In this document: positions 3,124 to 23,905 of the stretch, piece by piece
How the letters are laid out: every line of letters starts with the position of its first letter
Numbering within the stretch: the first letter of the stretch is position 1
Sequence record: NC_048173.1
DNA length: 64,000 bases
Strand: one strand, 5' to 3'
Translations under genes and position numbers: made by a program
The notes under the pieces: model-generated
The model's database searches: none
Seen by the model: the letters and a program-made list of their open reading frames with translations, nothing else
Told to the model about the DNA's origin: nothing

Positions 3124-3135
3124 GAGGACTCCTAC

Positions 3136-4113: not shown

Positions 4114-4125
4114 GGAGTTTAAATA

Positions 4126-7493: not shown

Positions 7494-7528
7494 AAAAAAA
7501 GAACAAAGGTGTGCCCCGAAGGGCACAC
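7494..7528 (-). terminator. Intrinsic terminator ending the peptide/radical SAM transcript
   Basis: GTGTGCCC-TTCG-GGGCACAC followed by CTTTGTTCTTTTTTT on the minus strand. Confidence 0.85.
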
Positions 7529-7530
7529 GC

Positions 7531-8187
7531 TTACAACTCAGCGATAAACTTCTCTTTCAAACCTTTGAGCGTCGTGTAATCACTTTTCTCAGCGGCAGTA
7601 CGAGCAGTCTGTTTAAAGTCGGTCATCTTTTCATGCAGCGCATTGGTACGCGCAACAATGGCTTCGTTCAACGCTTTCAAATCATCCAGCGTGAATTCGA
7701 ATTTCGCATTGTTGGTATCGACCCAGTAACCCGGATCTTGCTCTGTCGAAAGGTAACGACTAATCGCCGCCAGCGCCTTCTCATCGGTCTGGTAAACCCG
7801 GCCATTCAGTTCGAGTGGAGCGACCACTGCTTCACTGTACGCTTGGTTCACCCACGCAATGAGTTCGGTCAGTAACGCGACACACTTCCCGTGCGTCGAG
7901 ATACGCTCCGCCTGACGTTGAGCCAAATCAATCCCCAGCACATCACTGATAAAGGTGTGTGCAGACTTGAGCGTGAACTTAATCTCCAGTGGAGACAAGC
8001 CCTGCGCTTTCAGTTGGGTTGACAGCTCATCGTCTTTCATCCCATCCAGCAACCGGTAGTGTGCCAGACGAGACAACGACGGGTTCCAACGCGAGTCACT
8101 TAAATGCCCGTCCACAAACTGGCCGTGACGGTCAATCAGTTTCCCGCTGTTGAGGAAGCGATCTTTTATTTGGTCATTACTAAGCAT
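7531..8187 (-). CDS. DUF4376-like tail-fibre assembly-associated protein
   Basis: C-terminal half LNGRVYQTDEKALAAI..WVDTNNAKFEFTLDDLKALNEAI..KQTARTA matches the DUF4376 pattern from recall. Confidence 0.65.
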   Translation of the reverse strand: MLSNDQIKDRFLNSGKLIDRHGQFVDGHLSDSRWNPSLSRLAHYRLLDGMKDDELSTQLKAQGLSPLEIKFTLKSAHTFISDVLGIDLAQRQAERISTHGKCVALLTELIAWVNQAYSEAVVAPLELNGRVYQTDEKALAAISRYLSTEQDPGYWVDTNNAKFEFTLDDLKALNEAIVARTNALHEKMTDFKQTARTAAEKSDYTTLKGLKEKFIAEL

Positions 8188-8729
8188 TCAGTTTTCCCCA
8201 GGATGCCGACGTCTTTCAGCAGACCGTAGTCGAGGAACGAATAGTCCTTCGCCAAGTCATACTGCCAAACGAGGTTAGACACGCGCGATTCCACCGGCGT
8301 TTCTTCAGCAGTGTTGAACACCCCGATATGATCCCACAGCTCAAAGTAGTTGCACTGGTCTTTATTGTCGCGCACCACTTTGATTTTGTTATTCGGGAAC
8401 GACTGCGCCAAAGCAATCAGCGAGTCAACCTGCTTGTTACGCTTTGCACGGAACAGCACAGTCAACTTGCTCGGCGGGGTATCCAGCATACGCTGCTCTA
8501 AGCCGGCGTTACGCAGTTCAGCGTTCGCCAGTGAGTTATGGCCGTTCTCCACACAGTCCAGCTCAATGTGCACGTTCAGCGAGTGACGGATAACCAGCTT
8601 TTTCACTGTGTCGGTGTAGTTCTCTGCTTTACACAGGATGCTTACATCGAACAGCTTATGCTTCGTCAGAAAGGCATCCAGCAGCGTGGTATCAAGCCGA
8701 GTAAAATTGTGAATCATCAATGACTGCAT
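8166..8729 (-). CDS. Hypothetical protein of the radical SAM locus (187 aa)
   Basis: Start moved from the ORF-track 8879 to ATG 8729, which has an AGGA upstream and less overlap with the rSAM gene. No family recognised. Confidence 0.6.
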   Translation of the reverse strand: MQSLMIHNFTRLDTTLLDAFLTKHKLFDVSILCKAENYTDTVKKLVIRHSLNVHIELDCVENGHNSLANAELRNAGLEQRMLDTPPSKLTVLFRAKRNKQVDSLIALAQSFPNNKIKVVRDNKDQCNYFELWDHIGVFNTAEETPVESRVSNLVWQYDLAKDYSFLDYGLLKDVGILGKTECLVMTK

Positions 8730-10038
8730 TAGGCTTTTCCTGTTTTGCATGAACGTGTGGTTGAACAGCCTCTGGTTTCGCGCCAGAGAGTTTCGGAAGT
8801 TTGTTTTCCTGCGAGGCTTTAACACGGCACTCGTAGCAGTTGCACGACAACGGTTTGAACTGGTCACCGTAAGTACCAAAGCGACGTTCCCACCATTGGG
8901 CAGTTAACAGCTTAGCGGTGGTCCAGCCGCACTGACGACGCTCAGAGTGATACTGCTTACGCGCATCTTCTTCGCCATCGCCATTCTCGTACGCCGCGGC
9001 TACGCAGGACGCACAGATGTGTTTGGCCGGGCAACCCAGACAGGCATCAGGATACGACTGCCATTGGGTCTGGACTTCGTTCAGCAGCTTGCCGCCGTCG
9101 GTGTTGACAATCTCGCGACCCACGAGTTTCGCAATTGCCTGACGGGTGGTGACGGTAGACATGAAGCGGTTACAACCGTAGATGTTACGGTCAAAGCCGA
9201 GACAGGTCATGTGAACCGTGGTACCACAGTGCGGTTTCAGACGTTCAGGGTCGTAACGAATCTGATCGTTATGCTGTAACATCTCACGCCATTCCGGAGC
9301 CCACATGTTATCGATGTTCATGCCGCGTGGGGTGATGTGGCCCATCTCAGCAGTCGGGTCTAAGTGCAGACCTTTACCAATCCAGTATTCCAGCACTTCA
9401 ATCATCTGGTTAGAGATGCCGAGCGCCATATCACGTGGAATGATATCTTCGAAAATCATGTTACCGTAAATGGTACCACCGCCAGACTGGTCAATCAGCG
9501 ACTTCATGGACGCCGCGTAGTGCTTCAGCGTGTCATGGGTAAAGGTCGCTTTAATCCCGAGGTCGTTGATTTTCATCGACTTCAGGTAATGATACCCTTC
9601 CAGCGCTTTCTCGTAGGAACCTTTACGAGAGGTGGTGAAGATACGGTGACGGTCGTGGGTTTCCGGCAGACCATCGATTGACACGCCGATAGACAGTTTC
9701 GGATACCAGCGCTCAATGATTGAACGGTTTAACGGCTTATCAAAAAGCGTTCCGTTCGTGGAGATGGAGAACATGTACGGGCGGTTATCACGCGCCGCTA
9801 ACATCTCTGCAGTTTCGAAGGCCGCAATCAGCAGCTTCGGTTGCAGGAACGGTTCCCCACCGATAATGTCGATAATCGCGCCGCCTACATTCGGCTTGCC
9901 GCGGTCACGGTCAAAACAGGCGTGGATGAAGTCAACCACGTCATCTACACGGTTGTTACGCGGGAACTTGCGCTCGTAGCAATAATCGCAATCGAGGTTA
10001 CACGACAAGTTCGTAACAATCTGATACGTTACGTCCAT
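8692..10038 (-). CDS. Radical SAM/SPASM peptide maturase (Cxxx-repeat target type)
   Basis: CNLDCDYC, IIGGEPFL, STNGTL and SIDG..HDRHR core. SPASM Cys set CGTT..NIYGC..CLGCPAKHICASC..C. GAGGGG RBS. Confidence 0.9.
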   Translation of the reverse strand: MDVTYQIVTNLSCNLDCDYCYERKFPRNNRVDDVVDFIHACFDRDRGKPNVGGAIIDIIGGEPFLQPKLLIAAFETAEMLAARDNRPYMFSISTNGTLFDKPLNRSIIERWYPKLSIGVSIDGLPETHDRHRIFTTSRKGSYEKALEGYHYLKSMKINDLGIKATFTHDTLKHYAASMKSLIDQSGGGTIYGNMIFEDIIPRDMALGISNQMIEVLEYWIGKGLHLDPTAEMGHITPRGMNIDNMWAPEWREMLQHNDQIRYDPERLKPHCGTTVHMTCLGFDRNIYGCNRFMSTVTTRQAIAKLVGREIVNTDGGKLLNEVQTQWQSYPDACLGCPAKHICASCVAAAYENGDGEEDARKQYHSERRQCGWTTAKLLTAQWWERRFGTYGDQFKPLSCNCYECRVKASQENKLPKLSGAKPEAVQPHVHAKQEKPNAVIDDSQFYSA

Positions 10039-10051
10039 TACAACATCCCCC

Positions 10052-10927
10052 TCAGGACTGTGGCAAATTTAGGTAGGTGTGTAGATACTTGTAAGCCTCT
10101 ACACCGATGATTTGGGCCATGGCATTACAGCCTGAGTTAACGTAGAAGTCCACGTTCTCATTGTGCTTAATGTCACCGTTTGGTTCTACCAGTTTCAGCT
10201 GACCGCAAGCGTTACAGTTGGTGTGGTCGAAGAACTTCTCCAGACGGAACACCGTGTTGATACCGTTAACGCTGTTGAGATGCTGCATCTGTTCTTCAAT
10301 ACGCTTGTAGCCGTAAATGAAGTTCAGTACGTGGTCCTGATTGAGAGCTTTGTGCATCAGTTTGTCAAACGTCAGGGTCATAGCACCCACACGTAAGTGA
10401 TGCAGAGCAGCATGCAAACGCATGGTGTCTTCAAACCAGCGCGGCTTGCTAACGTGTTCGCGGGTCAGTACACCCCACGTAACCACATTGTCCAGCGCGT
10501 GCATGACTTCAAACGCTTCGTGCGCCCCTTCTTCCACAAACGCCATCAGACTGCGCTCGCCACCTTCGAAATGGTCGATGGAGACGATGATGCGGTCAAA
10601 CGTTTTCAGGAAGTCGAGTTGCGAGAGTTTGAGTTTTCGGCCGTTGGTAAACAGCAGGTGTTTTGCGGAAGGCACTTGCTCACGTGCTTCGCCTACAAAG
10701 TCAACTAACTTCTGGTAGGCCAATAACGGTTCGCCGCCCGTCCACAGGAATTCCTCTACTTGAGGATTTTCTTTTATAATGTCCACCATTGCCTCTTTGT
10801 GTTTTGTTTTCGAAACATCACCCTTGGCCATGTGAGCTGCCCCTCCACAGAAGGAGCAGTTCAGGTTGCACTTAGACGTCAGGGCAATGTCAATCATGGT
10901 AGCAGACGACTTAGGGGTATCGTGCAT
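10052..10927 (-). CDS. Second radical SAM protein (short, Twitch-like C-terminus)
   Basis: CNLNCSFC, WTGGEPLL, FTNG and VSID motifs. C-terminal CNAC..EPNGD..C. Start uncertain (10927 or 10897; the track start 10993 overlaps the upstream gene). Confidence 0.85.
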   Translation of the reverse strand: MHDTPKSSATMIDIALTSKCNLNCSFCGGAAHMAKGDVSKTKHKEAMVDIIKENPQVEEFLWTGGEPLLAYQKLVDFVGEAREQVPSAKHLLFTNGRKLKLSQLDFLKTFDRIIVSIDHFEGGERSLMAFVEEGAHEAFEVMHALDNVVTWGVLTREHVSKPRWFEDTMRLHAALHHLRVGAMTLTFDKLMHKALNQDHVLNFIYGYKRIEEQMQHLNSVNGINTVFRLEKFFDHTNCNACGQLKLVEPNGDIKHNENVDFYVNSGCNAMAQIIGVEAYKYLHTYLNLPQS

Positions 10928-11849
10928 CAGGGTTTTTGTTCCACAGATTTTCCATGAACGCGAATAACGGGTCGGAGACACGAACGTCTTCACCCGGGAC
11001 GATCAGTTTCGGGTCATGGTACGCTTTAAGAATAGCATCCAGCACCTTGTTGCGGTCGTTCAAACGCAGCAGCTCATCCACCGTCACAGTCTGACGGGTA
11101 AAGGAACTGACGGCATTCATCTCTTCGGCCGACAGCAGACCCGCTTCATTGACTTTACCGACCAAGAAGGTCAGTACACGATGTAAGTCAGCGGTAGTGT
11201 TAGGTTGCTCACCGTACTCATACTGCAACAGATAGTTGGTCCACGGCTTACGAATGCGTTTGGTAATCTCATGCGCATCGGTAATTGCGGTCCACTTCAT
11301 ATCACGGTGGTCCCATGTAAATTTATAGGAATACGCGAGCAGGTCGGCCAGACAGTCGATGCCTAACTCTTCGTACCCTTCAACCGGATAGTAACGCTCG
11401 AGGTTGAAATAACCCTCGTCAACGGTACCTTCTTCAACCAGCGTATAATAGAACGGGAACGAAGACGGGTATTCCCAGTTCCACTGACGCTGAATCATCG
11501 GCTTCATGCCGTGTTCTTTGAACGAAGCAAACACCATCTCCAGCGGCATGGAATAGTTCAGCACCGCATCCGTGAAGTAATACTTTTCGTTGACGAGCTT
11601 ACCGACGTATTCGGTTGTGCCATCGAGGTTGTACAGAATCTTAATCCGCAAACCATCCGGCGTGGTAAACTCTTCACGCACTTCTGCGTGATTTAAAATA
11701 TCACGCGGTCGCAGACGAGGGAATTCACCAGGGTTCATGCAAATCAAACGCAGGCGGTCATTCACGTGGTCGTTTACCGCGTCGGGCAGCCCAAGGTGTA
11801 TTGGGTAGTTAAAGTTGGTACGAAACGCCAAGTGTTCATTATTCTTCAC
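10911..11849 (-). CDS. Hypothetical protein of the radical SAM locus (312 aa)
   Basis: GTG start 10 nt after the peptide stop, preceded by TAAGGAG. Aromatic/acidic composition, no family recognised. Confidence 0.8.
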   Translation of the reverse strand: MKNNEHLAFRTNFNYPIHLGLPDAVNDHVNDRLRLICMNPGEFPRLRPRDILNHAEVREEFTTPDGLRIKILYNLDGTTEYVGKLVNEKYYFTDAVLNYSMPLEMVFASFKEHGMKPMIQRQWNWEYPSSFPFYYTLVEEGTVDEGYFNLERYYPVEGYEELGIDCLADLLAYSYKFTWDHRDMKWTAITDAHEITKRIRKPWTNYLLQYEYGEQPNTTADLHRVLTFLVGKVNEAGLLSAEEMNAVSSFTRQTVTVDELLRLNDRNKVLDAILKAYHDPKLIVPGEDVRVSDPLFAFMENLWNKNPDARYP

Positions 11850-11859: not shown

Positions 11860-12069
11860 TTACGATGGCCACGTTACCGCTTTAGCGCCACCTGATGCTG
11901 ACCAGCTGCAGCTGCCGTTACAACGGTAGGCCCCAGCCGGAATATTGTTTAAACGGTTCGCGTTATTCACCGTCCCCCGCGTGGCGATATAGTTATTCGC
12001 AGACGCGGTCGTGATGTACCCTTCGAGACGGGCGATTTGTTGCGCAACCTCGTTCAGTGAAACAGCCAT
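11860..12069 (-). CDS. Short MAVSLN-leader peptide (2 Cys; truncated-core paralog)
   Basis: TAAGGAG RBS. 49-aa leader homologous to the two long peptides, then CNGSCSWSASGGAKAVTWPS. Confidence 0.85.
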   Translation of the reverse strand: MAVSLNEVAQQIARLEGYITTASANNYIATRGTVNNANRLNNIPAGAYRCNGSCSWSASGGAKAVTWPS

Positions 12070-12078
12070 AGCGACTCC

Positions 12079-12477
12079 TTACGGTCCTGAGCAACCAGAG
12101 CATCCCGTACAAGACGACGAACAGCTACCAGAGCAGCCGCCTGAACAGCCTCCCGAACAACTTGTAGAGCACGTACCGGAACAGGTTCCCGTACAGTTAC
12201 CCGAACAACCCCCAGCACAACCACCCGTACAGTTAGACGAGCACGAACCGCCACACGTCCCTGAACAAGTGCCTGTACAACCGCCAGAACATGCAGACCC
12301 GCATGACCAGCTACAAGTGCCGCCACAATGGTAATGGTTGGCGTCTTGACCGGCTAATCGGTCGACGTTGTTTGAAGTTTTACCGCCGATGTACGCTTGA
12401 ACCCCTGCTTCTGTTTTCAGTGCAGCGGATTCAATGTTGCTCATCTGGTTCTTTACTGCATTAAGTGATACAGCCAT
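12079..12477 (-). CDS. Cxxx-repeat Cys/Gly/Ser-rich peptide (putative radical SAM substrate) 2
   Basis: TAAGGAG RBS. 50-aa leader plus 82-aa core with 21 Cys (18 consecutive Cxxx units, then CTG-CSG-CSGP). Confidence 0.9.
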   Translation of the reverse strand: MAVSLNAVKNQMSNIESAALKTEAGVQAYIGGKTSNNVDRLAGQDANHYHCGGTCSWSCGSACSGGCTGTCSGTCGGSCSSNCTGGCAGGCSGNCTGTCSGTCSTSCSGGCSGGCSGSCSSSCTGCSGCSGP

Positions 12478-12488
12478 GGTCGCTCTCC

Positions 12489-12875
12489 TTACATCGGACC
12501 GGAACAGGCAGAACAGCCCGTACAGGAACTAGAACAAGAGCCAGAGCACCCGTGACCACATCCGCCAGAGCACGATGAGGAACAAGCACTACCACAACCA
12601 CCCACGCAGGTGCCGGTACAGGTCCCAGAGCAACTGCCTGAACACGTACCAGAACAACCACCGGAACAGTTACCGGAACAACTCGAGCAACCATAGGAGC
12701 ACCCAGACGAACATGTCCAGCTACAGCTACCGTTACAGCGAATGTCCCCGGGTGACATGCCACCCAGATTGTTTGCGTTAAATGCTTTGGTTGCAACCTG
12801 ATTGTCCACAGAAGGTCCTGTGGCCAAAGACAGTCTCGCAATTCGCGCATTAACGTCATTAAGTGAAACGGCCAT
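12489..12875 (-). CDS. Cxxx-repeat Cys/Gly/Ser-rich peptide (putative radical SAM substrate) 1
   Basis: AAAGGAAG RBS. 46-aa leader plus 82-aa core with 21 Cys, ending CSGSCSSSCTGCSACSGPM. Confidence 0.9.
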   Translation of the reverse strand: MAVSLNDVNARIARLSLATGPSVDNQVATKAFNANNLGGMSPGDIRCNGSCSWTCSSGCSYGCSSCSGNCSGGCSGTCSGSCSGTCTGTCVGGCGSACSSSCSGGCGHGCSGSCSSSCTGCSACSGPM

Positions 12876-12929: not shown

Positions 12930-14129
12930 TTATCTGGTACCTGCAGCCGACTGGAGGTCGTCGCGGGTAGTGAGGCTGTTGTTAACGTGAACAGCCGCTT
13001 GCACCACGCCACCGGTGTTTTTGTTGAGGTACTGGTCGTGTGGGTTAGCTGCAGACTGGTGCGCCGCCAAGGCCGCATTCGTGTTAGCCAATGCCTGTTC
13101 CAGAGCCGCGATGCGATTTTCGAGCCCTTGGTTCGAGTTAGCCATGTTCGCAATCTGCTGTTTCAGGTTACTGATTTCCTGATTAGCGGCCGCCAGTCCC
13201 TGATTAAGGGTACCGAGCTGTTGCGAGAGCAGACCGACCTGCGTTTCCAGCACCAGAATCTCATCCATCAGCTCAGCGATTTGCAGCTGGGTCTTCTGGT
13301 AGTTCTGGTCAACGGTGTTAAGCTGGGTGTTCCACGTGCCAATTGAGCTAACCAGTGCGGCAATCTGCTGCGTTAAGTTAGTGTCGGTTGCGCCCAGTGT
13401 GCCGATATCTTGCAGGACAGCGTTAATGCTACTCTGTACTGTTTGAATCTGTGCCCGGACTTCAGCGGTGGAGTACACATCCAACTGACCACGGGTCAGG
13501 TTGTGAACGTTACCTTCGGCCGTACGGTGCTCTTCTAATGCCGACAGCATCTCTTGACGATACGCTTTAAGCATGTTTTGAATCTGCACCATTTCAGCGG
13601 AAGCGCCGATACGGATAGCATCGTTCAGCTTAGACAGCAGCGTAACAATATATTCAAAACCGAAGAAGTCACCCATGTCGCGGAAGGCAGGTGCGCCCGC
13701 AAACTCATCCGGCACGTCACGCAGTTCAGCGAAGTTAATCGTCGGGTCATCTAAGTTCAGCGTATTGATACACTGAATGATGTTGTCCACGTTCGCGGCA
13801 TACGGGCCACCGACAATCTGAGCCGATGCCGTAATGTCTGCCGGGACTGACGATTTGGTAATGACAATGGCTGTGGCAATCTCACGTCCGCCGGCCTGTT
13901 TGGTCAGGGACGGGTGGAGCAGAATCACTTCGTAGTTGGTACCCCGAACGAGTGGCTGATTAGGCGCATTCACCGGAGCCATTCGAAGCGTATCAACAAA
14001 GAACGGACCTGTCGGGAAAGCAAACGCTCGGTTAACAGTACCGGTACCGAGTTTAATCGGATGCGATACAGCATTACTGAGGTTGGTTCCGAACAGGTCC
14101 AATGGGTATTGCATTGCTACCTTACTCAT
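12930..14129 (-). CDS. Coiled-coil tail-fibre-like virion protein
   Basis: N-terminal YPLDLFGTNLSN domain is shared with the three giant fibre genes. Long heptad region. HRTAEGNVH and HQSAANPHDQYL fibre motifs. Confidence 0.7.
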   Translation of the reverse strand: MSKVAMQYPLDLFGTNLSNAVSHPIKLGTGTVNRAFAFPTGPFFVDTLRMAPVNAPNQPLVRGTNYEVILLHPSLTKQAGGREIATAIVITKSSVPADITASAQIVGGPYAANVDNIIQCINTLNLDDPTINFAELRDVPDEFAGAPAFRDMGDFFGFEYIVTLLSKLNDAIRIGASAEMVQIQNMLKAYRQEMLSALEEHRTAEGNVHNLTRGQLDVYSTAEVRAQIQTVQSSINAVLQDIGTLGATDTNLTQQIAALVSSIGTWNTQLNTVDQNYQKTQLQIAELMDEILVLETQVGLLSQQLGTLNQGLAAANQEISNLKQQIANMANSNQGLENRIAALEQALANTNAALAAHQSAANPHDQYLNKNTGGVVQAAVHVNNSLTTRDDLQSAAGTR

Positions 14130-14184: not shown

Positions 14185-17100
14185 TTACACGCTCAGGGTG
14201 GAATCATGAATCATAACATCAAGGACAGTTGCCGTTGTTGCATCAAAATAGATGTCAACGTACTTGCCGCCCGCGAATGCACGTTCTTCCGTCCAGAACA
14301 TAACCGGAGCTTTCGCCCCGCCCGATTGACGCATTGCCAGAATATAATCTTTCCCCGTAGGGACGGCGATGGTCTGGCCGCCCACTGCATTAGTACCAGT
14401 TAGCGTGGTTGGACTTGCAGGATTAGGTATCTTCACGCCCGTCATTGCAGCATTGGATACCGCGAGTTTTGTCGTACCGTCTTGCACCAGCTCGAACGCA
14501 ATATAGCACGGCGAGTTACCCGGGGCTTCATTAACAACGAAGGCCAGCGCGTTAGGCTGATTTAACAGCGCACCAGTCAGATTCAACGTAGCGTTACCCG
14601 ACAACGTTCCTTTAGAAACGCCGTTAAGGTATACATCCGCTGAATCATCTACTTGCACATTCAACACCAACGATGTTGATGTTGGTGTAAACGTGGTTTT
14701 CGTTGCCCAAGCGGTTCCGGCTGCCAGTTTACTCTCTGGGATGAGGGTAATTGCTGGTGAAGCCAGTGGTGGGCTATAGGCGCTAGCACGTGTCCCAACA
14801 TTCGGCCAAAGTTTCTCGGCATAGTTGGTCAGTAACATCCACGGCGCGGGGGACGCAGGGAAAGACAGGCGCTGGACTGTGTCGAAGTTACCGCCTAACT
14901 GGTTTGCTGTTTCCAGCGCTGCAGCAGTACCGTAAGACTTCGTTAAATCCGCACCCGGACGAGTGATGTTCCAGAATCGTGTAGCATTCTGAGACGTGGC
15001 CCCGTACCCAAAGCGACAACTGCGTGCAAAGGTCGGTGCTGCTGTCACCAAGTCCACTTCCGCGTATTTATACGTGGCTGTGTTTCTCAGCTGACTTAAC
15101 GTTAACCCTTTCTTCGCCGCAATGATGGCTCGGATATTGTCATCGCGTACACCGGTGGTCGGCAGTAGTGCATGTTCTACCGCGATATACAGCATGTTAC
15201 CGCGACGTTCAGCATACACGTGCGCATACCACTTACTCCATGCCAGCAAGTCCGTGGTATCCGCATCCAACGTGGCGATTAACTTAGATGACGCCTGACG
15301 GTAGTTCTCTTTGAGCTGAATCAGACCAGACAGGTTAACGTGCGACTCAATTGAGTTGCCGATAGCCAGACATAACGTCTTCTCGACGTTTGCCGTGGTG
15401 TCTTCCTTCTTCAGCGCAGCAAGCACTACTGCAACCCCGTCGTTGTCACCGTCGTTGGACGTGATAACCGTGTTGAACACATAGTCACCCACCAATTCAT
15501 CCGAGATAAAGCCCACGAACGTTGCGGTGTTTAACGTACATTCAACGACGTCGTCGGCTGCCACGTATTTCCATGCTGCCAGTTCGGAGTCATTCGCCGG
15601 CTGGTCTGCAGTGGAGTTGTTGTGGCTGAAACGGTACCAGCTGTTATAGATGTCTGCGAACGATGGGAAGGCAAACGAGTCTACCGTCCCCAAGTTTTCC
15701 ATGTTCGAGTACAACGTATCTGGCGCAGCCGCACTTGGCAGGTAGTTGTGTGCATAGCGGTTGTCAGCATGACTCAACAGTGCACCTACACGGCCCAGAC
15801 GTTTCACACGGCTGATTTTCGCTTCGGTAATCGCGTTGCTGGATGTTGTTGCATAACCGATATACAACCGGGAGTCAGTATCAGCAAGTTTCGTTTTCGA
15901 GACCAGATACTCCGCCGCTCCAGACGCGTTTAACTGCACATGGAAATAGAGCGTAGCATTCTGGTAGTCCGTAGGGAATAGCGTTTTGAAATCGAACGTC
16001 GCCGCAGGGACAAGGTGGTCTTCCATCTTCGCAAAGAACGGAACCGCTTGCGTGATGTACAGAATCATCCCTTCTGCGACTTGCGGGCCAAAGAGAATTG
16101 TGGGGCGACCACCGGTTTCAAACGCAATACCTTTCCCGCTGTAAACCGTCCCCCCTAGATAAACTCCGAGCATTACAAAACCAATTTTTGCGATCTCATC
16201 CGTTTCCTGAAGATACACATAATCGATTTCATTATTAGACGGGTTAAACGAAATACGCGTGCCTGTCCATGTTGTCAAATCTTGAGAGATTTTCAACAGG
16301 TAACTCAAGTCGGTACTAGAGCTACTGGTATTCACACGACATAGCGTTCTTGTCCTTAATAACCAGCCGTCGGCACGCTTAATCAAACGCATCTGACTCA
16401 TCTCTGCCAAATCATTGAGCGTGACCGCAGACACCCTGAATTTCTCTTCCTTCCACACCTCGACACCACTGATCATCGACAGAGAAATAATTCCATTGTC
16501 AAACGTCATCGGGATACGGTAGAAATAAGTGCTGTTATCAAACCCACCGGCCGTAGCGTTCGGAGTCAGAATACAAGTTTGCAGCACGCAGAGGTTTTGT
16601 CCTCCGAAGTCAAAGATACTCAGCCAAGCGATACGCAGCGTAGGATCAATAGCCAACCAGCCCGGAATTTTCGCGTCTAAGAAGTTTTCAATAGCTGACC
16701 ACTGCTCAGCACTGATAGCAACCCTCTCGTTGGTGATGACGGTGGTGCCTGCAATATTTCGATACGCACGACTTTCTGCCTTTCTAAACGAAGCACCGTT
16801 GAGATAGGATTGGCTACCGTTATAGACTTGTCCCAGGCGACAAATCGCTTCGTAGTCATTTTGCGACACGGTCTCACGATCATTAGACGGCCCCCAACCC
16901 GTATAATCCGGCACACCGTAGGTAGTGTCCGTGTCGTACGCGATGCTCATACACGACCCGGTGCTACGTTGACGAAGAAGCATTTTCTTGGCAGTGCCGC
17001 CCAAAGCCGCCATCCCGCGCATTCTAAGAATGTACGGCGAAGCGTATGGACCAAGCACATTCACACTGTTTCCAATTAAGTTGGTCCAATCGGCATTCCA

Positions 17101-19869
17101 GTGCGCGCTTTCAAACGCGTCAGTATTTGGTAAGCGGAAACGCACCAAAAAGTCTTCTGCATCTGAGTTGCCGATACCGGTGACCCTATCCCCCTGAACG
17201 AACAGGCACATAGTGTACCCGTAGAAAAGATTGTTCGAGGTTTGACCGTATTTCCCTTTCGGGAAGGTCAACCCGGTTTCATCAACACACAACGGGAAGA
17301 AATCGTCGTCGAGCGTGGCCGTTTTCGCGGAGAGATCGATAACATAAGACACCGTCCACTGAGGATCGCTATTTCGAATACCCTGCGCCTGCAACGAAGA
17401 ACGGGCATGCAAACGAACACGAATTTTATTGCCTTTTGCTGCAGCATAAATGTTTCTGCGGCTAAAGCTGATCATATTACGCGAAGTCCATTTCGCGGCC
17501 CCTTCTGGTGTGATGTACCAAAAGTTTGTCGTGTTAGGGTCAGTGGAGTTGGTACCATACGTTGAAAAACGCGCAGCATCACCCGCGGGGTACTTCCCAG
17601 TTAGCGGCACTTTGGACATCAGCAGGTCGGAAGTTTTCCCGACTAGACTTTCATCCAACGTCCAAATACAGGTATAAAAGTCTTGGGGGACCAAGTACAT
17701 TTTAAGCAGGCACACTTTCCCCTCGGTTAACACCAACCGGTCTTCATTGGTGTTAAAGTACGAAGGGGTAATTGGGTCGACTGTTCCGCCATTAAGCGCT
17801 TCCAAGGTCACGCGCGAGACACGGGTGTGTTTCGCCATGTTCATGGTACCGTCAAACATAACCAAATAGTATTTGTCATCGGTCCCTTGGAAAATACCGC
17901 ATTCATCACCAATGACAGTGACCGTTTTGAACTTCACGTTCGGGGCGATAGCTTTTAGCCCCACGGGCACATACTCTACGGTGGTTGGAATCGGATTGGA
18001 AACTGCGCCTGTTTCACTCACATCCGCTGTCCAATACAACACCATCTCGGAGCCGGCATACCCGCTCGTGGCATTACGAAGCACATAGAACTTACCGTTC
18101 TCTTCCCGACCGATGTTTGCCCGAAGTGCGGCTTCCATTTGTTGAGACGAGCCGTCGTAACGACCGGCGGTTGGGATAGGCAGGAAGCCACTGTCTCCGT
18201 AATACGTACCGCTGGCCACCCACGACGGTAACAGGTTGTTGGCTTTGTCTTCCGCCCCATCGATATCCAGCTTTAACTGATAACCGAGTTTAGAGACTGC
18301 CGCCCGTTGAGTCGTGTAGTCGATACCTGCCGCCAAATACGCCAACCCCGACAGAATAGGTGAGGCGGTTGGGACATTCTGCAAGTCTGCGGCGACGTGG
18401 GTGTGGACTTTCAGCGCCTTCGTGGTTAACTGGTCACGGAACACTTGTGTCACTGGCTTGTCAGCCGGTGCTGTGTTGTTGACCTTATCCAGACCAAACG
18501 ACAGTGCCGTCAGGTTAATGGTTTGGGTCGAACCGAAGGCTGCGTTGTTGATTTTGAAAGTCTCATCAACGTAGTTATTCAGTTTCAACAGCAGGTCGTT
18601 CACTCCCTTCTGTGACAGCGCGTAGTTCGGCGCAATAACCTCTACACTGTCTGTCAAACGGAACAGCCCTTCTACGGTATTCGTCGCAGCCGGGGTCTGA
18701 GCCGTCATGTTCAGTGGGGACTGCGTCGAGCCATTACCGCCCATCAACACCGTCGACGTGGACTTGAAGCTCGGTTGAGCATTCGAGTTCAGTGGGGCGT
18801 AAAGGTACAGGTTAATGGACTCTGGGGTAATCAAGAAAGCGCCGTTATAAATCGGACGGACATCTTTCGCCCCAGCAGCATTACCTTTGGAAGGTACGAA
18901 CAGCTCATCATAACCTGCACGGGAGGACACGCCTACCCCACGCTGGTTGTTGTCACTGTCTGCCGCCAGTTCAATGACCGCTTCTGTACCGGTCAACAGG
19001 ATTTTGCCCGCGGTGAACCGCAGGGCAGACTTCCCGTCTTGCGTGGCGTACATCAGCTCATCGTTATTGATAGCACGGAACCGTCCAAAGACTTGGCCCA
19101 TGGTATCTTCGAGCAGCCCATCCACGATACGCTGTGAGATTTTGTGCTCGACCATAATCGCCACTAACTCAGCGAGCGTCTTACTGAACGCTTTCACTGC
19201 GTTGGTTGCGGCATCCCCTGCCGCTAACGCCCCGATTTGTGCCGGGGTGTATTTGTGCTGATGAGGTGTTCTATGGTGCTGTAACAGTTTATCCGCATAC
19301 AGCTTTTGGGCTGCACGAGACAAAGCGGTTAAGGCGGCATTAATCTCAGTGTCGAGTTGACCAGCCTTCGCTTCAATCTTCAGACGGATACCATCAATCG
19401 ACTTCGCCACCTCATCACGCTGTAGCGCTTCGGCAAGCGTTGCGGGTGGGTCAATTGGGTCAATGGTAATTGGGTAGCGCATCAACGATTTCCAGTCGAT
19501 GTTGCGCGGTTCGGTCAGTTCAGGATTAACTAAGAAGATGCCAATGTCCGATTCAGGAACCGAATAAGACGAACCGAGAACCTGAGCTTTGTAGGTAATC
19601 TCGGTTTTGGTCAGTAGCATTATCCCGCCGAAAAGCTGAGCGTTTGCAGCGTGGGCACCCTCTGAGTAATACAACGCGAGGTAGTAATCAATACCTTCAA
19701 ATAACAGATTCCCCGCTGTGTCCTTAACCTCTAAGCCGTTACGAAAGAAGGGCGCCTCGGGAGGCACCACTAAATTGAAACGGTTAGGATAAGTGGACGA
19801 CTTGAGGGAACCTTCCGCGATGTTATCAGGGCTTTCGCCCGTCAAATCTTCGGGATAATGTTTTCTCAT
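14185..19869 (-). CDS. Giant tail-fibre/baseplate-fibre protein (1894 aa)
   Basis: YPEDLTG N-domain. HHRTPHQH, LDKVNNTAPADKPV and HTHVAADL fibre motifs. Beta-rich C-terminal domains. Confidence 0.75.
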   Translation of the reverse strand: MRKHYPEDLTGESPDNIAEGSLKSSTYPNRFNLVVPPEAPFFRNGLEVKDTAGNLLFEGIDYYLALYYSEGAHAANAQLFGGIMLLTKTEITYKAQVLGSSYSVPESDIGIFLVNPELTEPRNIDWKSLMRYPITIDPIDPPATLAEALQRDEVAKSIDGIRLKIEAKAGQLDTEINAALTALSRAAQKLYADKLLQHHRTPHQHKYTPAQIGALAAGDAATNAVKAFSKTLAELVAIMVEHKISQRIVDGLLEDTMGQVFGRFRAINNDELMYATQDGKSALRFTAGKILLTGTEAVIELAADSDNNQRGVGVSSRAGYDELFVPSKGNAAGAKDVRPIYNGAFLITPESINLYLYAPLNSNAQPSFKSTSTVLMGGNGSTQSPLNMTAQTPAATNTVEGLFRLTDSVEVIAPNYALSQKGVNDLLLKLNNYVDETFKINNAAFGSTQTINLTALSFGLDKVNNTAPADKPVTQVFRDQLTTKALKVHTHVAADLQNVPTASPILSGLAYLAAGIDYTTQRAAVSKLGYQLKLDIDGAEDKANNLLPSWVASGTYYGDSGFLPIPTAGRYDGSSQQMEAALRANIGREENGKFYVLRNATSGYAGSEMVLYWTADVSETGAVSNPIPTTVEYVPVGLKAIAPNVKFKTVTVIGDECGIFQGTDDKYYLVMFDGTMNMAKHTRVSRVTLEALNGGTVDPITPSYFNTNEDRLVLTEGKVCLLKMYLVPQDFYTCIWTLDESLVGKTSDLLMSKVPLTGKYPAGDAARFSTYGTNSTDPNTTNFWYITPEGAAKWTSRNMISFSRRNIYAAAKGNKIRVRLHARSSLQAQGIRNSDPQWTVSYVIDLSAKTATLDDDFFPLCVDETGLTFPKGKYGQTSNNLFYGYTMCLFVQGDRVTGIGNSDAEDFLVRFRLPNTDAFESAHWNADWTNLIGNSVNVLGPYASPYILRMRGMAALGGTAKKMLLRQRSTGSCMSIAYDTDTTYGVPDYTGWGPSNDRETVSQNDYEAICRLGQVYNGSQSYLNGASFRKAESRAYRNIAGTTVITNERVAISAEQWSAIENFLDAKIPGWLAIDPTLRIAWLSIFDFGGQNLCVLQTCILTPNATAGGFDNSTYFYRIPMTFDNGIISLSMISGVEVWKEEKFRVSAVTLNDLAEMSQMRLIKRADGWLLRTRTLCRVNTSSSSTDLSYLLKISQDLTTWTGTRISFNPSNNEIDYVYLQETDEIAKIGFVMLGVYLGGTVYSGKGIAFETGGRPTILFGPQVAEGMILYITQAVPFFAKMEDHLVPAATFDFKTLFPTDYQNATLYFHVQLNASGAAEYLVSKTKLADTDSRLYIGYATTSSNAITEAKISRVKRLGRVGALLSHADNRYAHNYLPSAAAPDTLYSNMENLGTVDSFAFPSFADIYNSWYRFSHNNSTADQPANDSELAAWKYVAADDVVECTLNTATFVGFISDELVGDYVFNTVITSNDGDNDGVAVVLAALKKEDTTANVEKTLCLAIGNSIESHVNLSGLIQLKENYRQASSKLIATLDADTTDLLAWSKWYAHVYAERRGNMLYIAVEHALLPTTGVRDDNIRAIIAAKKGLTLSQLRNTATYKYAEVDLVTAAPTFARSCRFGYGATSQNATRFWNITRPGADLTKSYGTAAALETANQLGGNFDTVQRLSFPASPAPWMLLTNYAEKLWPNVGTRASAYSPPLASPAITLIPESKLAAGTAWATKTTFTPTSTSLVLNVQVDDSADVYLNGVSKGTLSGNATLNLTGALLNQPNALAFVVNEAPGNSPCYIAFELVQDGTTKLAVSNAAMTGVKIPNPASPTTLTGTNAVGGQTIAVPTGKDYILAMRQSGGAKAPVMFWTEERAFAGGKYVDIYFDATTATVLDVMIHDSTLSV

Positions 19870-19872
19870 TAC

Positions 19873-22800
19873 TTATTCCTTTTCAAGATTTAGCTGCGTA
19901 ACCACGAAGTCCCAGTTACGCTGGGTCAGGTTCCATGGGTTCTGCATTGCAATCATTGGGATTTTACCGAACTCGTAAGCATACCAATTCGCCACGTTTG
20001 TTTCGAGCGTCTTGGTCGTGTTGTCGTTGTACGTGATGGTAAACTTCGCTTTCACGAAACACGTTAAAGCGCCTGCCGTTGGTTCAGTGGTTACGGTGAA
20101 GTAACCTTTAAAGTTAGCACTCGGCACATAATTGATAGTTGCTGTAGCGTTACCCACCGCACCCGCTTGGTTGGACTTAGCAACCTGTAGACCATCTACC
20201 CACGCGCTTAGTACACCCTGTCCCGCGAGATTCACGGACACAGTTTTGGCGTTGGTCAATAGTCCCGGCTCGATATGCGTTGCGGCATAACCCCGACGAT
20301 TAAGGTTTGCCAATCCGATAGCAGTCCCCGCATCAGTTCCCGGGTTCAGGAAATCATCCGTCAGTACCGGTGTTACCCCAAACGTTGACTCACGCGAACC
20401 CGTCGTCCACAGCCCGTGAGGAACCGCGTACGAGGCAGTGTCGCGTAAAATGTTCGTCGTCTCTTCGGTGAGTATCACCTGTGTGGCAATATCCACGTCC
20501 GCCATCTCTGTACCTAAGAAGAACCCAACACGACCACGTTGGAGTCCGTTCTTTTTCGCCGCATACGCCGACAGCTCAGAGCCACGGATATACGACTTAA
20601 TAAGGCCAGTGTGGTAGTTCAGACGCGTCAGGTATTCCGTTGGGATACTGCAATCAAAGATAGAACCCATGATGCGGTAGCCCAGTTTGCTTGAAGAGGC
20701 GTAACCGACGTACGGCCCTTCAAAGAAACGCGAAATGTCCTGTTCGAACACCAAGGTGCAGAAACGGTGAACCTCAACGCGAGTGTCGTCGTCCACTACC
20801 CCGATAAGGATATTAAGACGCTTTTCTGCCGGGATATAACGGTAGCGTGTAGCCAGTACCCGCGGTTTCTTAATACTCGTACCGTCGACGTGGGTCGGGA
20901 AGTTAAAGCTTGCTGCTACTTCAACATCTTCAGCGCGTACAAATGGGACGAGGTTAGTCCGTGGGATTTCAACATACGGCAACGCAACCGGCTGCGGGGT
21001 CACTTCATTAACGAACGCAATCGATGCCTGTGCTTTCGCCGCGATATCAATCGCAAACAAAGACAGTACCTCGTGCTTACCGTTAACGGGGGCGGCAACA
21101 AACTCGAGAATCCCCGACTCGTTCGACATGAAGGAACCGTCGTAGGTGACTTGTCGTTTTGCCTGCGGGTTGGCCATGTTCTTCCAACGATAAGGAGACT
21201 GACCCTTCACCCCAACCCACACCCGTAGCCCACCTGCCGCGGCAGCGCCTTCTGCTACCACGAGAGTACCTTGCGTACGCAACGCCATTCCCGCCGTGTT
21301 AGAGAACATTGCCACGCTCGGGGTCGAGGTCACTGACTTATCGGCCACACCGTACGGCTCAGTAATCTCCAAACCGGGCACTTTCACATCAGCAGGACTG
21401 TAGTCGCTCGCTGTCGTGTCAATACCGCCGTGGGCGCGCTGGTCAGCAATATGCTCTTGCAGCTCACGGAACTGACCGAAGTCAATCACTTGGTTAAACT
21501 GAATCGGGCCACCTGAGGTAATCACTGCGGTAGCGTTCGTGTCAACGTAACCCAGATACAACATCTCAGTGTTCAGCGAGTCACTCGGTACCGGTGCACC
21601 CACCGCTTGGAATTTACCCAAGGTAACGTTTCCGTAAATAAAGAAACGCATGTTGGCAGTAGGCAGGTTGTTGGCGATGGTGCCGACCTTGGTAGCCGCC
21701 GAACTGTTGTACACAGGTGTAGCGCCGTCCATGACATCGAAGGCAATCGACGCTGGCTTAGTGGTGTCTTCGCACAACGACAGAATAGCAATCGCATGCA
21801 CACCCGGCAGTAACTCGATTTCCACATTCGGATCGGTCGCTGCTTCAATAACCGGGTTTTCATCCACCCAGATAGACACTTTACCCGCAGACCGTACGCG
21901 GATTTTGATAATGTCATCCGTAAAGCGCAAACGCACCTTCGCTGCCAGTCGCACGTTAGCCCCGCCCAAACGGTTATTCGCCGTAGAAACAGCAACCGCT
22001 TGTGGCAATGGGTTAGCCGGCTGGGTGTTATGCACCACACCCGCATTCCAGTTGTTCTCGATACCGCACGCGGTGTAATACCACGTCCCGCTCGGCACCG
22101 CCGCAAGGTTAACCACCCCGTCAAACGTCCCTTCCGCTGAGTCAAGGGCACGAGCCACGAAATAACGGTACGCCGTGGTCGGCGTCAGGTTCCAGCCCGA
22201 TACGTTAAAGGTGACCGACTCCACCGTCGTGAACTCTAAGGTGTCTTTGTACATCACACCGAAGAAACGTTTGTTGATATCCGCCAAACGGTCGTTCAAC
22301 GCTTTAAGTACCGCGGGGGCAACCGCCTGACCGTCTTCCACTTCAGAAAGCTGGGAGGCAATCTTCACGGTACCGTACGCCATGCGGGTGGCTTGCCCAA
22401 TCTGCAGCATTGACCAGTCGTGCTTGTGGTCTTTGGCTACTAAGGCATCCGTACGCGCCTTCTGCGGCGTTGAGAGCGGTTTATTCAAGTCAGCAGTGTT
22501 ATCTACCGAACCCAAGTTTAAATCGCCCTTATCGAGGGTAATGCCGGCACCGGACATCGGCTTGTTGTTAATCAACAGCGTCTTCGGCACCATGTCATTA
22601 AAACCGTCGTTGTACGGCTTACCGGAGGCGGGCGTGGCCGCTACGCCATCAGCCACTGCACCCGGGCCTGTTACGAGTTTTACCTTTCCCGGGAGCGCTT
22701 TGGTGGCTTTCGGGATGTTCAGGTCAGCTTCAAGCGGTGCAGACGGTGTACCTTTCCCTTTGAACGTCATGTTCGTTGAGGAGATATTAATCTGCACGTT

Positions 22801-23895
22801 CTCAGGGTCGCCGTTAACGTCCTTCGACTGATACTTCTTCACCGTACGGCCAGTCAGTAAAGCCACACCGTTTAAGGTGAGCTTATCAACGCCCAATGCT
22901 GTACCGTTGGTGGTAACCCGCAGGGTGTTCGTCCCACAGACATACTCAACGTATTTCGCGCCTGACAAGTCCGTCCCTGCCGCTGCCACAATACCACCTT
23001 GTGTAATCAGCTGAATCTTCGCAGCCGACAGAATCAGTTTGGTGGTGTTGGTGCTATCAGCAATAACGGTGGCTCCGTCCGCAAACTGGAAGGTGCCTTT
23101 AACGTTCTTCGACAGATAGCGGTGGAGGTACAGTTGGATATCCGCATCGGACAAACCCTGTGAGCGAATGTTTTCAATCAGCTCGCGCAGGTTTTTCCCG
23201 TAGGCCAGAAACGTATCCGGAACTTCCAACCCGACCGGGTGCGCGTTAAGCTGGGTCGGGGTGACACTGTGCGGGTCAGTTGCCGCAATGTGCGCCGGGT
23301 AGTTAAACGCTTCGATATCCGTGAACAGTTGGTTCGCCTGTCGCGTTAATGCTTGCAAGTCCGTTTTCAGGTCTTGCACATCGGCATCAACAGCAGCCGC
23401 CACATCATCCACAGCAGATGCGGTGTACTGTTTGTTTTTGGCATCGGCCCAACTGGTATAGCTGGGCTTTTGTGGGAACAGCGCAGGCACCCCATTCAGC
23501 GAACGGTAGCTGGCCGAACGGGGGTTGTTAATGTACTTAATCAGGTAGTCCAGAATCTCTGTCAGCGGGTCGTAGAAATCACCCCCCAACAGATTTCCGT
23601 TGAACACGAGATTACCACTGATTTCAGGATTAATGAACTGGACACCGCAGTAGACCGGTGGTGCATCTGTAGCCAATGAAGCCTTCAGTGCCGACAGCTC
23701 ATAAACGTATTCGTAGTCGGAGCCTTCGTCCAACGGGGTGGTGCTATTCCCGTTGAAGATTTGTAACGCCCCGAAGAACGGGGCATGGCTTAACATGATA
23801 ACACGGTCGGTGTTCTCATTGGACTCGAGAATACGCTCCTCAGTGAAGACGTTAGTAGTCGCCTTCCCTGTCGGGTCGTACGGATATCTAGTCAT
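19873..23895 (-). CDS. Giant tail-fibre-like protein (1340 aa)
   Basis: YPYDPTG N-domain. HIAATDPH, LGSVDNTADLNKPLS and HKHDWS motifs. Paralog of its neighbours. Confidence 0.75.
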   Translation of the reverse strand: MTRYPYDPTGKATTNVFTEERILESNENTDRVIMLSHAPFFGALQIFNGNSTTPLDEGSDYEYVYELSALKASLATDAPPVYCGVQFINPEISGNLVFNGNLLGGDFYDPLTEILDYLIKYINNPRSASYRSLNGVPALFPQKPSYTSWADAKNKQYTASAVDDVAAAVDADVQDLKTDLQALTRQANQLFTDIEAFNYPAHIAATDPHSVTPTQLNAHPVGLEVPDTFLAYGKNLRELIENIRSQGLSDADIQLYLHRYLSKNVKGTFQFADGATVIADSTNTTKLILSAAKIQLITQGGIVAAAGTDLSGAKYVEYVCGTNTLRVTTNGTALGVDKLTLNGVALLTGRTVKKYQSKDVNGDPENVQINISSTNMTFKGKGTPSAPLEADLNIPKATKALPGKVKLVTGPGAVADGVAATPASGKPYNDGFNDMVPKTLLINNKPMSGAGITLDKGDLNLGSVDNTADLNKPLSTPQKARTDALVAKDHKHDWSMLQIGQATRMAYGTVKIASQLSEVEDGQAVAPAVLKALNDRLADINKRFFGVMYKDTLEFTTVESVTFNVSGWNLTPTTAYRYFVARALDSAEGTFDGVVNLAAVPSGTWYYTACGIENNWNAGVVHNTQPANPLPQAVAVSTANNRLGGANVRLAAKVRLRFTDDIIKIRVRSAGKVSIWVDENPVIEAATDPNVEIELLPGVHAIAILSLCEDTTKPASIAFDVMDGATPVYNSSAATKVGTIANNLPTANMRFFIYGNVTLGKFQAVGAPVPSDSLNTEMLYLGYVDTNATAVITSGGPIQFNQVIDFGQFRELQEHIADQRAHGGIDTTASDYSPADVKVPGLEITEPYGVADKSVTSTPSVAMFSNTAGMALRTQGTLVVAEGAAAAGGLRVWVGVKGQSPYRWKNMANPQAKRQVTYDGSFMSNESGILEFVAAPVNGKHEVLSLFAIDIAAKAQASIAFVNEVTPQPVALPYVEIPRTNLVPFVRAEDVEVAASFNFPTHVDGTSIKKPRVLATRYRYIPAEKRLNILIGVVDDDTRVEVHRFCTLVFEQDISRFFEGPYVGYASSSKLGYRIMGSIFDCSIPTEYLTRLNYHTGLIKSYIRGSELSAYAAKKNGLQRGRVGFFLGTEMADVDIATQVILTEETTNILRDTASYAVPHGLWTTGSRESTFGVTPVLTDDFLNPGTDAGTAIGLANLNRRGYAATHIEPGLLTNAKTVSVNLAGQGVLSAWVDGLQVAKSNQAGAVGNATATINYVPSANFKGYFTVTTEPTAGALTCFVKAKFTITYNDNTTKTLETNVANWYAYEFGKIPMIAMQNPWNLTQRNWDFVVTQLNLEKE

Positions 23896-23905
23896 TACGA
23901 ATCCT

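Follow-up and report, generated by a model that had tools for sequence, protein, structure and literature searches.

A radical SAM/SPASM-type enzyme in the tail gene module of a jumbo phage and the cysteine-repeat proteins that are its likely substrates

What is a radical S-adenosylmethionine (SAM) enzyme doing among the tail genes of a jumbo phage, and on what does it act? The gene concerned, gp157, lies in a stretch of 64,000 nucleotides (nt) from sequence record NC_048173.1, here called the window, in whose coordinates positions are given. Between 7000 and 15000 the window is 100% identical to Erwinia phages Derbicus (NC_048173) and EarlPhillipIV, which are 224-kb jumbo phages with Erwinia amylovora as host, and 78-81% identical to phages Phobos and CR5. 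In Derbicus, gp157 is annotated as a 'radical SAM domain-containing protein' and nothing more. Thioether formation by radical SAM enzymes has been described in small secreted peptides and in a few cellular proteins. We propose, with a probability of about 0.7, that gp157 is the SPASM subunit of a three-component system (gp159, gp158 and gp157) that modifies the repeats of two cysteine (Cys)-repeat proteins, CxxxA and CxxxB, and perhaps a third, CxxxC, all within a late tail-gene unit. An earlier, sequence-only reading had singled out gp157 but saw neither the substrates nor the second radical SAM enzyme nor the setting among tail fibres, all of which alter what the finding means. The gene and its parts, with the evidence in brackets, are:

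8692..10038, minus strand: gp157, predicted radical SAM/SPASM-type maturase, 448 residues from an ATG start (open reading frame (ORF), Pfam, NCBIfam, AlphaFold2 and Foldseek)
9979..10002, minus strand: CX3CX2C motif for the SAM-binding [4Fe-4S] cluster, codons 13-20 (Cys positions and conservation)
8929..9228, minus strand: SPASM-type region, codons 271-370 (seven invariant Cys and the frequent C279)
8827..8844, minus strand: extra CxCxxC triad, codons 399-404 (conservation in the near clade)
8695..8796, minus strand: disordered C-terminal tail, codons 415-448 (AlphaFold2 pLDDT, the predicted score of the local distance difference test, below 50)

The ORF of gp157 is intact, and the module showed no sign of broken genes. 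The protein exceeds the cut-off of the Pfam Radical_SAM model (PF04055; 45.9 bits against 29.5), belongs to PHROG 1802 (E 6e-112) and has 94 homologues, so that the gene picked out by the sequence-only reading is real, on the minus strand. In the translation, Cys stands at residues 13, 17, 20, 41, 271, 279, 289, 333, 336, 342, 345, 370, 399, 401 and 404. Every string quoted in that reading was recovered: the cluster motif beginning at residue 13 is C13/C17/C20 of CNLDCDYC, C271 and C289 form CGTT..YGC, C333/C336/C342/C345 form CLGCPAKHICASC, C370 belongs to the distal QC, and C399/C401/C404 form the additional SCNCYEC ahead of the disordered tail. In an alignment of 27 sequences with 30-90% identity, C13, C17, C20 and the seven Cys of the SPASM set (C271, C289, C333, C336, C342, C345 and C370) are invariant. 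The cluster motif as a whole is kept in 27 of the 27 and in 91-92 of 95 homologues, and an eighth Cys of the SPASM-type region, C279, is present in 81 of the 95. The final spacing of the seven-Cys motif is CX2C, and residues 277-287 form a β-hairpin in the model described below.

The AlphaFold2 model of gp157 (pLDDT 86.3, predicted template modelling score 0.83) opens with its first strand at residues 3-8 and continues as an alternation of strands and helices, which Foldseek matches with probability 1.00 to many radical SAM structures. The best fold match is CteB (E 1e-15), with ChlB second and anSME, SuiB, TigE and SkfB among the others, over about 390-410 columns; the alignments with CteB, ChlB and anSME span 392-417 columns at E 1e-15 to 1e-10. 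CteB is also the top sequence match in the PDB (E 8e-8, 18% identity). The hidden Markov model (HMM) comparison that the sequence-only reading had proposed as a check, with TIGR04115, anSME and ranthipeptide maturases, was run. The PapB family (NF047865) scores 113.2 bits (cut-off 340) and TIGR04115 111.5 bits (cut-off 350), both over the full length of gp157; anSME (TIGR03942) scores 50.6 bits (cut-off 349) over the N-terminal half, HxsB 54 bits (cut-off 370), TIGR04463 50 bits and viperin 37 bits (cut-off 180). Since PapB and TIGR04115 are the highest-scoring families, the closest relatives of gp157 are peptide maturases. Against TIGR04115, relatives of gp157 from viruses and bacteria give 182 (locus L014), 153 (L017), 277 (L021) and 266 bits (L090), and bona fide members of the family (L019, L026, L048, L094, L095 and L099) give 395-502 bits. 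The scores thus form a continuum from 111 to 502 bits, in which bona fide members occur on viral and bacterial contigs alike, and since the intermediate relatives bridge the gap, gp157 is placed as a distant branch within the lineage of CXXX-repeat maturases. An exhaustive scan of 1.84 billion representatives gave 42 clusters only at E<=1e-30. Among isolated phages there are 64 records of the protein, and those listed come from SPN3US-like or Erwinia jumbo phages, save two unannotated human-faecal phage contigs at 24-25% identity. Taken together, sequence and model support gp157 as a radical SAM/SPASM-type peptide or protein maturase, with its catalysis predicted.

If gp157 is a maturase, where is its target? 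On the same strand as gp157, and 2.0-2.8 kb upstream of it, lie two ORFs with Cys in a regular repeat, followed by a shorter paralogue:

12489..12875, minus strand: CxxxA, 128 residues, the first 46 forming the N-terminal region; 21 Cys (TIGR04114, PHROG 6085, ribosome-binding site AAGGAAG)
12079..12477, minus strand: CxxxB, 132 residues, the first 50 forming the N-terminal region; 21 Cys (TIGR04114, PHROG 6085, ribosome-binding site TAAGGAG)
11860..12069, minus strand: CxxxC, annotated as gp160, 69 residues with the shared N-terminal region and 2 Cys (PHROG 6085, ribosome-binding site TAAGGAG)

All three open with MAVSLN in the window. The spacing between successive Cys is four residues in 18 of the 20 intervals of CxxxB and in 16 of the 20 of CxxxA, with a few spacings of three. 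The TIGR04114 model (cut-off 20) gives 23.8 bits for CxxxB and 20.0 bits for CxxxA, which just equals the cut-off, and does not match CxxxC. The matches to PHROG 6085 have E-values of 4.5e-43 for CxxxA, 2e-40 for CxxxB and 2e-24 for CxxxC. Across the near clade, the position after Cys is serine or threonine in 74%, the next is glycine in 60% and the third is glycine, serine or threonine in 86%. The cores of CxxxA and CxxxB contain no aspartate, no glutamate and almost no aromatic residues. On this sequence evidence, CxxxA and CxxxB are most likely the substrates of gp157, and CxxxC is perhaps another.

These frames have largely been missed in annotation. RefSeq has gp160 as CxxxC but calls gp161 over CxxxB and gp162 over CxxxA in other frames, the wrong-frame calls covering 12054-12326 and 12461-12859 on the minus strand. 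In Phobos, Kwan, Huxley and SPN3US the annotation over the same ORFs is in other frames, on the opposite strand or absent; the Cys-repeat stretches concerned include L007 (3144-3965), L008 (3233-3994), L009 (3223-3960) and L002 (6029-7145). Which frame is the genuine one? Ribosome-binding sites stand at normal spacing before CxxxB, CxxxC and gp159 (TAAGGAG) and before CxxxA (AAGGAAG), and nothing comparable precedes the RefSeq alternative-frame starts. The three ORFs form three orthologous groups across five phage genera (Derbicus, Phobos, Kwan, Huxley and SPN3US), and their N-terminal regions are paralogous, with z of 5.6-9.9 against shuffles. Tandem-repeat matches in the DNA reach merely 75%, while the period of the protein is strict. 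For these reasons taken together, the Cys frames are genuine. A recent DNA duplication as the origin of the repeats was considered and rejected on the same 75% figure.

Is the pairing of enzyme and repeat a peculiarity of this locus? Relatives with 23-62% identity to gp157 were surveyed in IMG/VR, with at least six Cys at a spacing of 3-4 residues as the criterion and all six frames read. A same-strand Cys-repeat ORF lies within about 3 kb in 77 of the 80 loci that carry a gp157 relative, and in two of the three exceptions the match is near a contig end. The substrate ORFs of the surveyed loci range from 36 to 480 residues with up to 92 Cys, and the period is four in 2100 of 2520 units. Full-length bacterial relatives adjoin Cys-repeat genes as well, from 52-residue peptides up to a 667-residue protein with 122 Cys. 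This constancy bears on whether gp157 acts instead on a nucleotide, a DNA base, a cofactor or some other non-protein substrate, with the Cys-repeat neighbour being incidental. Jumbo phages do encode other radical SAM enzymes, and gp157 gives weak matches to viperin and QueE-type families. However, the pairing is kept in those 77 of 80 loci and across 23-90% identity, the non-peptide families score at most 37 bits, and the alignment of the SPASM region with peptide maturases is full-length; we consider a non-protein substrate exceedingly improbable. The sequence-only reading had held that its peptide-maturase assignment would fall if the best homologues proved to be non-peptide enzymes; the best are PapB, TIGR04115, CteB and ChlB, with viperin at 37 bits.

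The survey also shows what the repeat is attached to in several loci. In L015 the substrate is a fibre protein of the tail-collar kind, with 138.8 bits against Pfam Phage_tail_fib, and has the Cys repeat at its C-terminal end. In L014 and L016 the substrates belong to PHROG tail-fibre families (E 1e-31 to 1e-40), again with the repeat at the C-terminus; over L014-L016 as a whole the PHROG tail-fibre matches have E 1e-31 to 1e-55. In L004, six phage tail repeats are followed by a junction like that of the window proteins and then by the Cys repeat. The repeat is fused to a GDSL esterase in L077 (4240-5487) and to an F5/8-type-C (galactose-binding-like) domain in L072 (4502-5881), and these two fusions suggest a C-terminal module portable among phage surface proteins. 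A relative with 47% identity (L170) keeps all parts of the module in a permuted order beside Peptidase_S74 tail fibres.

Several other arrangements were seen in the survey. Metagenome-assembled contigs of Termititenax/Margulisbacteria (L090-L093) carry proteins of 495-667 residues with 79-122 Cys beside TIGR04115-like enzymes. Many loci, viral as well as bacterial (L019, L030, L048, L054, L095 and L098), have a second recurrent N-terminal domain of ~105-116 residues ahead of the Cys repeats, which has no family match and is not related to the N-terminal region that the window proteins share. A 246-kb viral contig (L084, at 2983-3369, 7789-8949 and 8986-10248) has four radical SAM genes and three Cys-rich ORFs, one of which has Cys at every second residue, alternating with aspartate, asparagine or arginine.

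How does this system relate to those already described? The pairing of enzyme and target is of an already known, computationally defined kind. In the CXXX-repeat system of TIGR04115 and TIGR04114 (with TIGR04117 and TIGR04118), a SPASM enzyme likewise lacking a RiPP recognition element (RRE; RiPP, ribosomally synthesised and post-translationally modified peptide) is paired with a target that has Cys at every fourth residue. The gp157 branch differs from it in adding a second radical SAM enzyme, gp159 and, in the near clade, the Cys triad, and in its score of 111.5 against 350. The TIGR04115 family is defined by computation, and we found no biochemical characterisation of it in the literature. 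On sequence grounds, the system of the window is a divergent three-component variant of this CXXX-repeat system, placed inside a tail module, and its chemistry would be thioether formation. Enzymes of the PapB/freyrasin type (NF047865) also take short Cys-containing repeats in tandem as their substrate, each repeat receiving one thioether (PMC9413430), but they link Cys to a downstream aspartate or glutamate, and their products are small peptides rather than fibre proteins. The nearest characterised precedent is CrpC of Methanococcus voltae (TIGR04463), which places thioethers onto the 29-kDa Cys-repeat protein CrpA; CrpA and the Cys-poor CrpB have a common N-terminal region of ~47 residues (PMC13692751). 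There a Cys-repeat protein, not a peptide, is modified, as is proposed here, and the Cys-poor CrpB parallels CxxxC; CrpC differs in having a predicted N-terminal RRE, a 17-residue repeat with a C-x-x-Q/D motif and a cellular rather than viral origin. The SCIFF/thermocellin maturase CteB (PDB 5WGG/5WHY) has the three-cluster, thioether-forming architecture and aligns with gp157 over ~392-399 columns, whereas its own N-terminal domain of ~100 residues is not found in gp157. HxsB and HxsC, like gp157 and its neighbour, are an adjacent radical SAM pair, one with and one without SPASM, beside a short-period repeat target; they differ in that the repeat is H-x-S and in scores far below the cut-offs of 370 and 268.

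These precedents bear on the type of reaction. The same substrates might undergo a different radical reaction, such as conversion of Cys to formylglycine, epimerisation or formation of C-C or C-O links, or the Cys array might serve mainly to bind metal. In that direction point the presence of anSME among the top folds, the lack of an acidic acceptor in the cores, the pairing of two different radical SAM enzymes, which implies at least two reactions or sites, and the variety of reactions catalysed by SPASM enzymes (PMC10114670). On the other side, anSME scores 50.6 bits against 111-113 bits for the thioether-associated families, CteB ranks first both by fold and by PDB sequence, and, of the Cys-rich repeat substrates whose outcome has been characterised, PapA and CrpA acquire thioethers. 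We therefore hold such other chemistry to be improbable and retain thioether formation as the predicted reaction.

Now what accompanies gp157 in the module, and how would the substrate be recognised? Between the Cys-repeat genes and gp157 lie two genes:

10911..11849, minus strand: gp159, conserved 312-residue partner, fold not known (PHROG 8030; AlphaFold2 pLDDT 84)
10052..10927, minus strand: gp158, second radical SAM enzyme, 291 residues from an ATG (Pfam Radical_SAM 43 bits, HxsC 49 bits)

An in-frame GTG at 10993 would extend gp158 to 313 residues. It has a CX3CX2C motif and two or three C-terminal Cys; its best NCBIfam match is HxsC (49 bits against a cut-off of 268), and its PDB sequence matches include BtrN. 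The gp159 model finds nothing better than E 0.16 in the PDB and, among viral predicted structures, its own orthologue only. In the gp157 branch, gp159 homologues always lie between substrate and enzyme, and both the gp159 family and the gp158-type enzyme are confined to the branch with at least 30% identity to gp157; two HMM rounds found no gp159 homologue in bona fide TIGR04115 loci. In P0130, P0136 and P0137 the gp158-like and gp157-like domains make up one polypeptide, with the gp158-like domain N-terminal, in the order of the genes here, and one fused representative sits after a 570-residue Cys-repeat protein and a 221-residue protein of no known identity. The N-terminal halves of the 634-668-residue relatives had been considered as a fused gp159; hhalign and HMM searches rejected this and showed them to be gp158-like radical SAM domains. 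The second radical SAM gene of SPN3US is annotated from 8175, so that its CX3CX2C falls upstream of the start, and an in-frame ATG at 8055 includes the motif (L002, 8055-8969); this is an issue of start-codon annotation, and the gene is not broken.

With respect to recognition, the sequence-only reading had stressed that gp157 leaves no room for an N-terminal RRE. The absence itself is confirmed: the barrel begins with the strand from residue 3, and the alignment with CteB starts at CteB residue 106. As an unusual feature it did not hold up, since the TIGR04115 and NF047865 models have the cluster motif at their own positions 4-12. The models of SCIFF, CcpM, HxsB and QhpD align to gp157 from their own positions 85-106. 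The reading had also supposed that leader binding is supplied in trans by a neighbour and that the extra Cys motif binds another metal or cluster. In its strict form, this means that gp157 cannot bind its substrate alone, that gp159, the sole candidate, supplies recognition, and that CxCxxC is an extra metal or Fe-S site. The missing N-terminal domain and the place of the gp159 family between substrate and enzyme, in this branch only, argue for it. However, gp159 belongs to no PqqD/RRE family and has no known fold, gp156 and gp158 falling outside the modelling; across gp155-gp163, no Pfam or NCBIfam match to a PqqD/RRE family was obtained. Moreover, bona fide TIGR04115 loci pair enzyme with substrate without any gp159, and a SPASM enzyme lacking an RRE can bind the leader directly. 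The precedent for the latter is the cyclophane synthase ChlB (PDB 9GM3/9GMC), which at 372-375 residues is similar in size to gp157, has no N-terminal RRE and was crystallised with its substrate leader; it differs in forming C-C cyclophane links on aromatic residues, from which the window cores are nearly free.

The Cys-rich tail of gp157 gives a similarly divided picture. With 74-77 of the 95 homologues carrying it, the CxCxxC triad extends through the entire near clade except for truncated entries. The distribution of Cys41 is near-identical, P0078 being the sole tail-less relative that keeps it. A relative with 47% identity (P0120) has a variant Cys-rich tail, and several relatives carry further tail Cys. 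Thus Cys41 and C399/C401/C404 co-occur throughout the near clade and may form a four-Cys fourth metal site; the local confidence of the model at these positions is 69-76. On the other hand, the triad by itself is three Cys only, and relatives with 30-37% identity lack it together with the tail, so that the shared reaction does not depend on it. In all, we regard the strict in-trans account as doubtful. For the three-component system that we prefer, a trans-acting adaptor for leader binding is possible, with gp159 as the candidate recognition partner. A separate suggestion, that the conserved C-terminal end of gp157 is a docking motif, was weakened by an overlap with the next gene. The last 38 nt of gp157, stop codon included (8692-8729), are shared with gp156, and the same bases encode, in different frames, the conserved C-terminus of gp157 and the conserved N-terminus of gp156, here and in SPN3US. 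Conservation of the gp157 end need not reflect gp157 function, because its codons overlap the conserved gp156 start.

The genes run in the order gp163, CxxxA, CxxxB, CxxxC, gp159, gp158, gp157, gp156, gp155, with gaps of 9-54 nt or overlaps from gp163 to gp155. The remaining features of this putative unit and its surroundings are:

14185..27535, minus strand: three giant paralogous virion proteins (1894, 1340 and 1209 residues), directly upstream (SPN3US orthologues gp168-170)
12930..14129, minus strand: gp163, 399-residue coiled-coil virion protein, first gene of the putative unit (SPN3US orthologue gp167)
8166..8729, minus strand: gp156, conserved, 187 residues, function not known (PHROG 7988; also in the permuted module L170)
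7531..8187, minus strand: gp155, DUF4376 protein, last gene before the terminator-like site (Pfam DUF4376, 46 bits)
7509..7528, minus strand: terminator-like hairpin of 8 pairs (6 G-C), then a T-rich run (consensus scan only)

In the consensus scan, no stronger minus-strand terminator-like site was found between gp163 and the hairpin at 7509-7528. A sigma-70 promoter scan did no better than shuffles, in a phage with its own RNA polymerases, and the window contains no tRNA genes. A DUF4376 domain also adjoins the CXXX gene in L005. The tail setting is documented in SPN3US: gp167, the orthologue of gp163, is a tail protein by mass spectrometry (PMC10052503 Table S2), and gp168-170, likewise placed in the tail by mass spectrometry, are tail fibre/baseplate candidates of 'paralog family C' (PMC5694885, PMC10052503). 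The SPN3US orthologue of gp157 is 'non-virion' by mass spectrometry (PMC5694885, PMC10052503), as expected for an assembly enzyme. Further away, four ORFs on the plus strand (697-5028; 295, 509, 325 and 300 residues) are annotated as (putative) virion structural proteins. Downstream of the module on the minus strand (6274-7462) lie a DUF1353 protein, with the annotation tail assembly chaperone, and a protein that matches Peptidase_M15 weakly and whose Phobos counterpart is annotated as a putative peptidase M15A.

This setting helps to judge whether the Cys-repeat proteins are virion parts at all, or precursors of diffusible RiPP products, bacteriocin-like or signalling, that would be released at lysis. 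It is not hard to see the appeal of the latter, given that the nearest named families of gp157 are RiPP maturases, that some bacterial relatives lie beside Cys-repeat peptides of 52-88 residues typical of RiPP precursors, and that an N-terminal region followed by a repeat core has the layout of leader and core. Yet neither a protease nor an exporter was recognised among the module genes with Pfam, NCBIfam and PHROG, and the module sits amid the tail genes, with tail proteins on one side and chaperone-like genes on the other. In addition, other phages carry the repeat covalently in tail fibre, esterase and lectin-like proteins of 250-480 residues, and the three-paralogue arrangement is kept across five genera. 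We judge free RiPP products to be very unlikely here and continue with the repeat proteins as parts of the tail.

A plausible course of the reaction can then be sketched. The C13/C17/C20 cluster would cleave SAM reductively, and the resulting 5'-deoxyadenosyl radical would take a hydrogen from a carbon of a serine-, threonine- or glycine-type residue within the four-residue repeat. The radical would be trapped as a thioether by the thiolate of a nearby Cys, which the first auxiliary cluster might hold, and the reaction would be repeated ~20 times along the repeat region. Recognition would proceed through the 46-50-residue N-terminal region common to the paralogues and the junction before the first Cys, either directly on the enzyme or via gp159 as an adaptor. 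The acceptor residue, the processivity and the roles of gp158 and gp159 in this scheme are what we infer from sequence. The products would be fibre-like tail parts rather than free peptides, and are read so because related phages carry the same repeat as the C-terminal tip of tail fibre proteins; in Derbicus, their incorporation into the tail would follow the same pattern.

Several results weigh against this account. The Pfam SPASM model gives no match to gp157 even at E<=10; the SPASM assignment is made because of the Cys pattern, the full-length NCBIfam alignments and the fold matches, with the Pfam model silent. Gp157 reaches the curated cut-off of no named family and stays far below all of them. 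CxxxA, CxxxB and CxxxC all match PHROG 6085, a family of function not known, and that alone; in none of the three, with their short N-terminal regions, is a fibre domain recognisable. Their orthologues do not appear in the published virion proteomes of SPN3US (PMC10052503), which could not list them, given that the annotation lacks the ORFs or has them in the wrong frame. With no aspartate or glutamate in the cores, a link of the PapB/QhpD type is excluded, and the choice of acceptor residue is therefore a guess. Lastly, we found no report of product mass, Fe/S content or SAM cleavage for the gp157 branch or for TIGR04115.

We found no paper on the three-component form, the Cys triad, the mis-annotated substrates or the link to tail fibres, although a prior description elsewhere is possible; one cyanophage paper lists a radical SAM gene merely as an 'antibiotic synthesis' gene. 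Whatever the chemistry, the Cxxx genes are mis-annotated in Derbicus, Phobos, Kwan, Huxley and SPN3US, so that published virion proteomes could not find them. For enzymologists, the module offers a SPASM enzyme that lacks an RRE and comes with two partners, a second radical SAM enzyme that looks obligate and a protein of unknown fold.

What would the finding mean more widely? The probable cross-linking of these fibre-like proteins by gp157 suggests that many phages chemically harden the tips of their tail fibres. A fuller version of this idea, which we put forward tentatively and at somewhat less than an even chance, is that many tailed phages, from ~30-kb genomes to jumbo phages, build fibre tips or accessory fibres from (Cys-x-x-x)n, which radical SAM enzymes would turn into ladders of tens of thioether rings. 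In the SPN3US/Derbicus branch three components would share this work: the SPASM enzyme, perhaps bearing a fourth metal site, the other radical SAM enzyme, and a protein of new fold that serves in recognition or as a chaperone and takes the place of the RRE. The orphan TIGR04115/TIGR04114 system would thereby gain a biological setting. If true, phage tail building would routinely include thioether chemistry, and virion proteins would gain a new class of post-translational modification; the tips would be a natural example of heavily cross-linked protein rods, in which a RiPP-type modification serves to make structural material of the virion.

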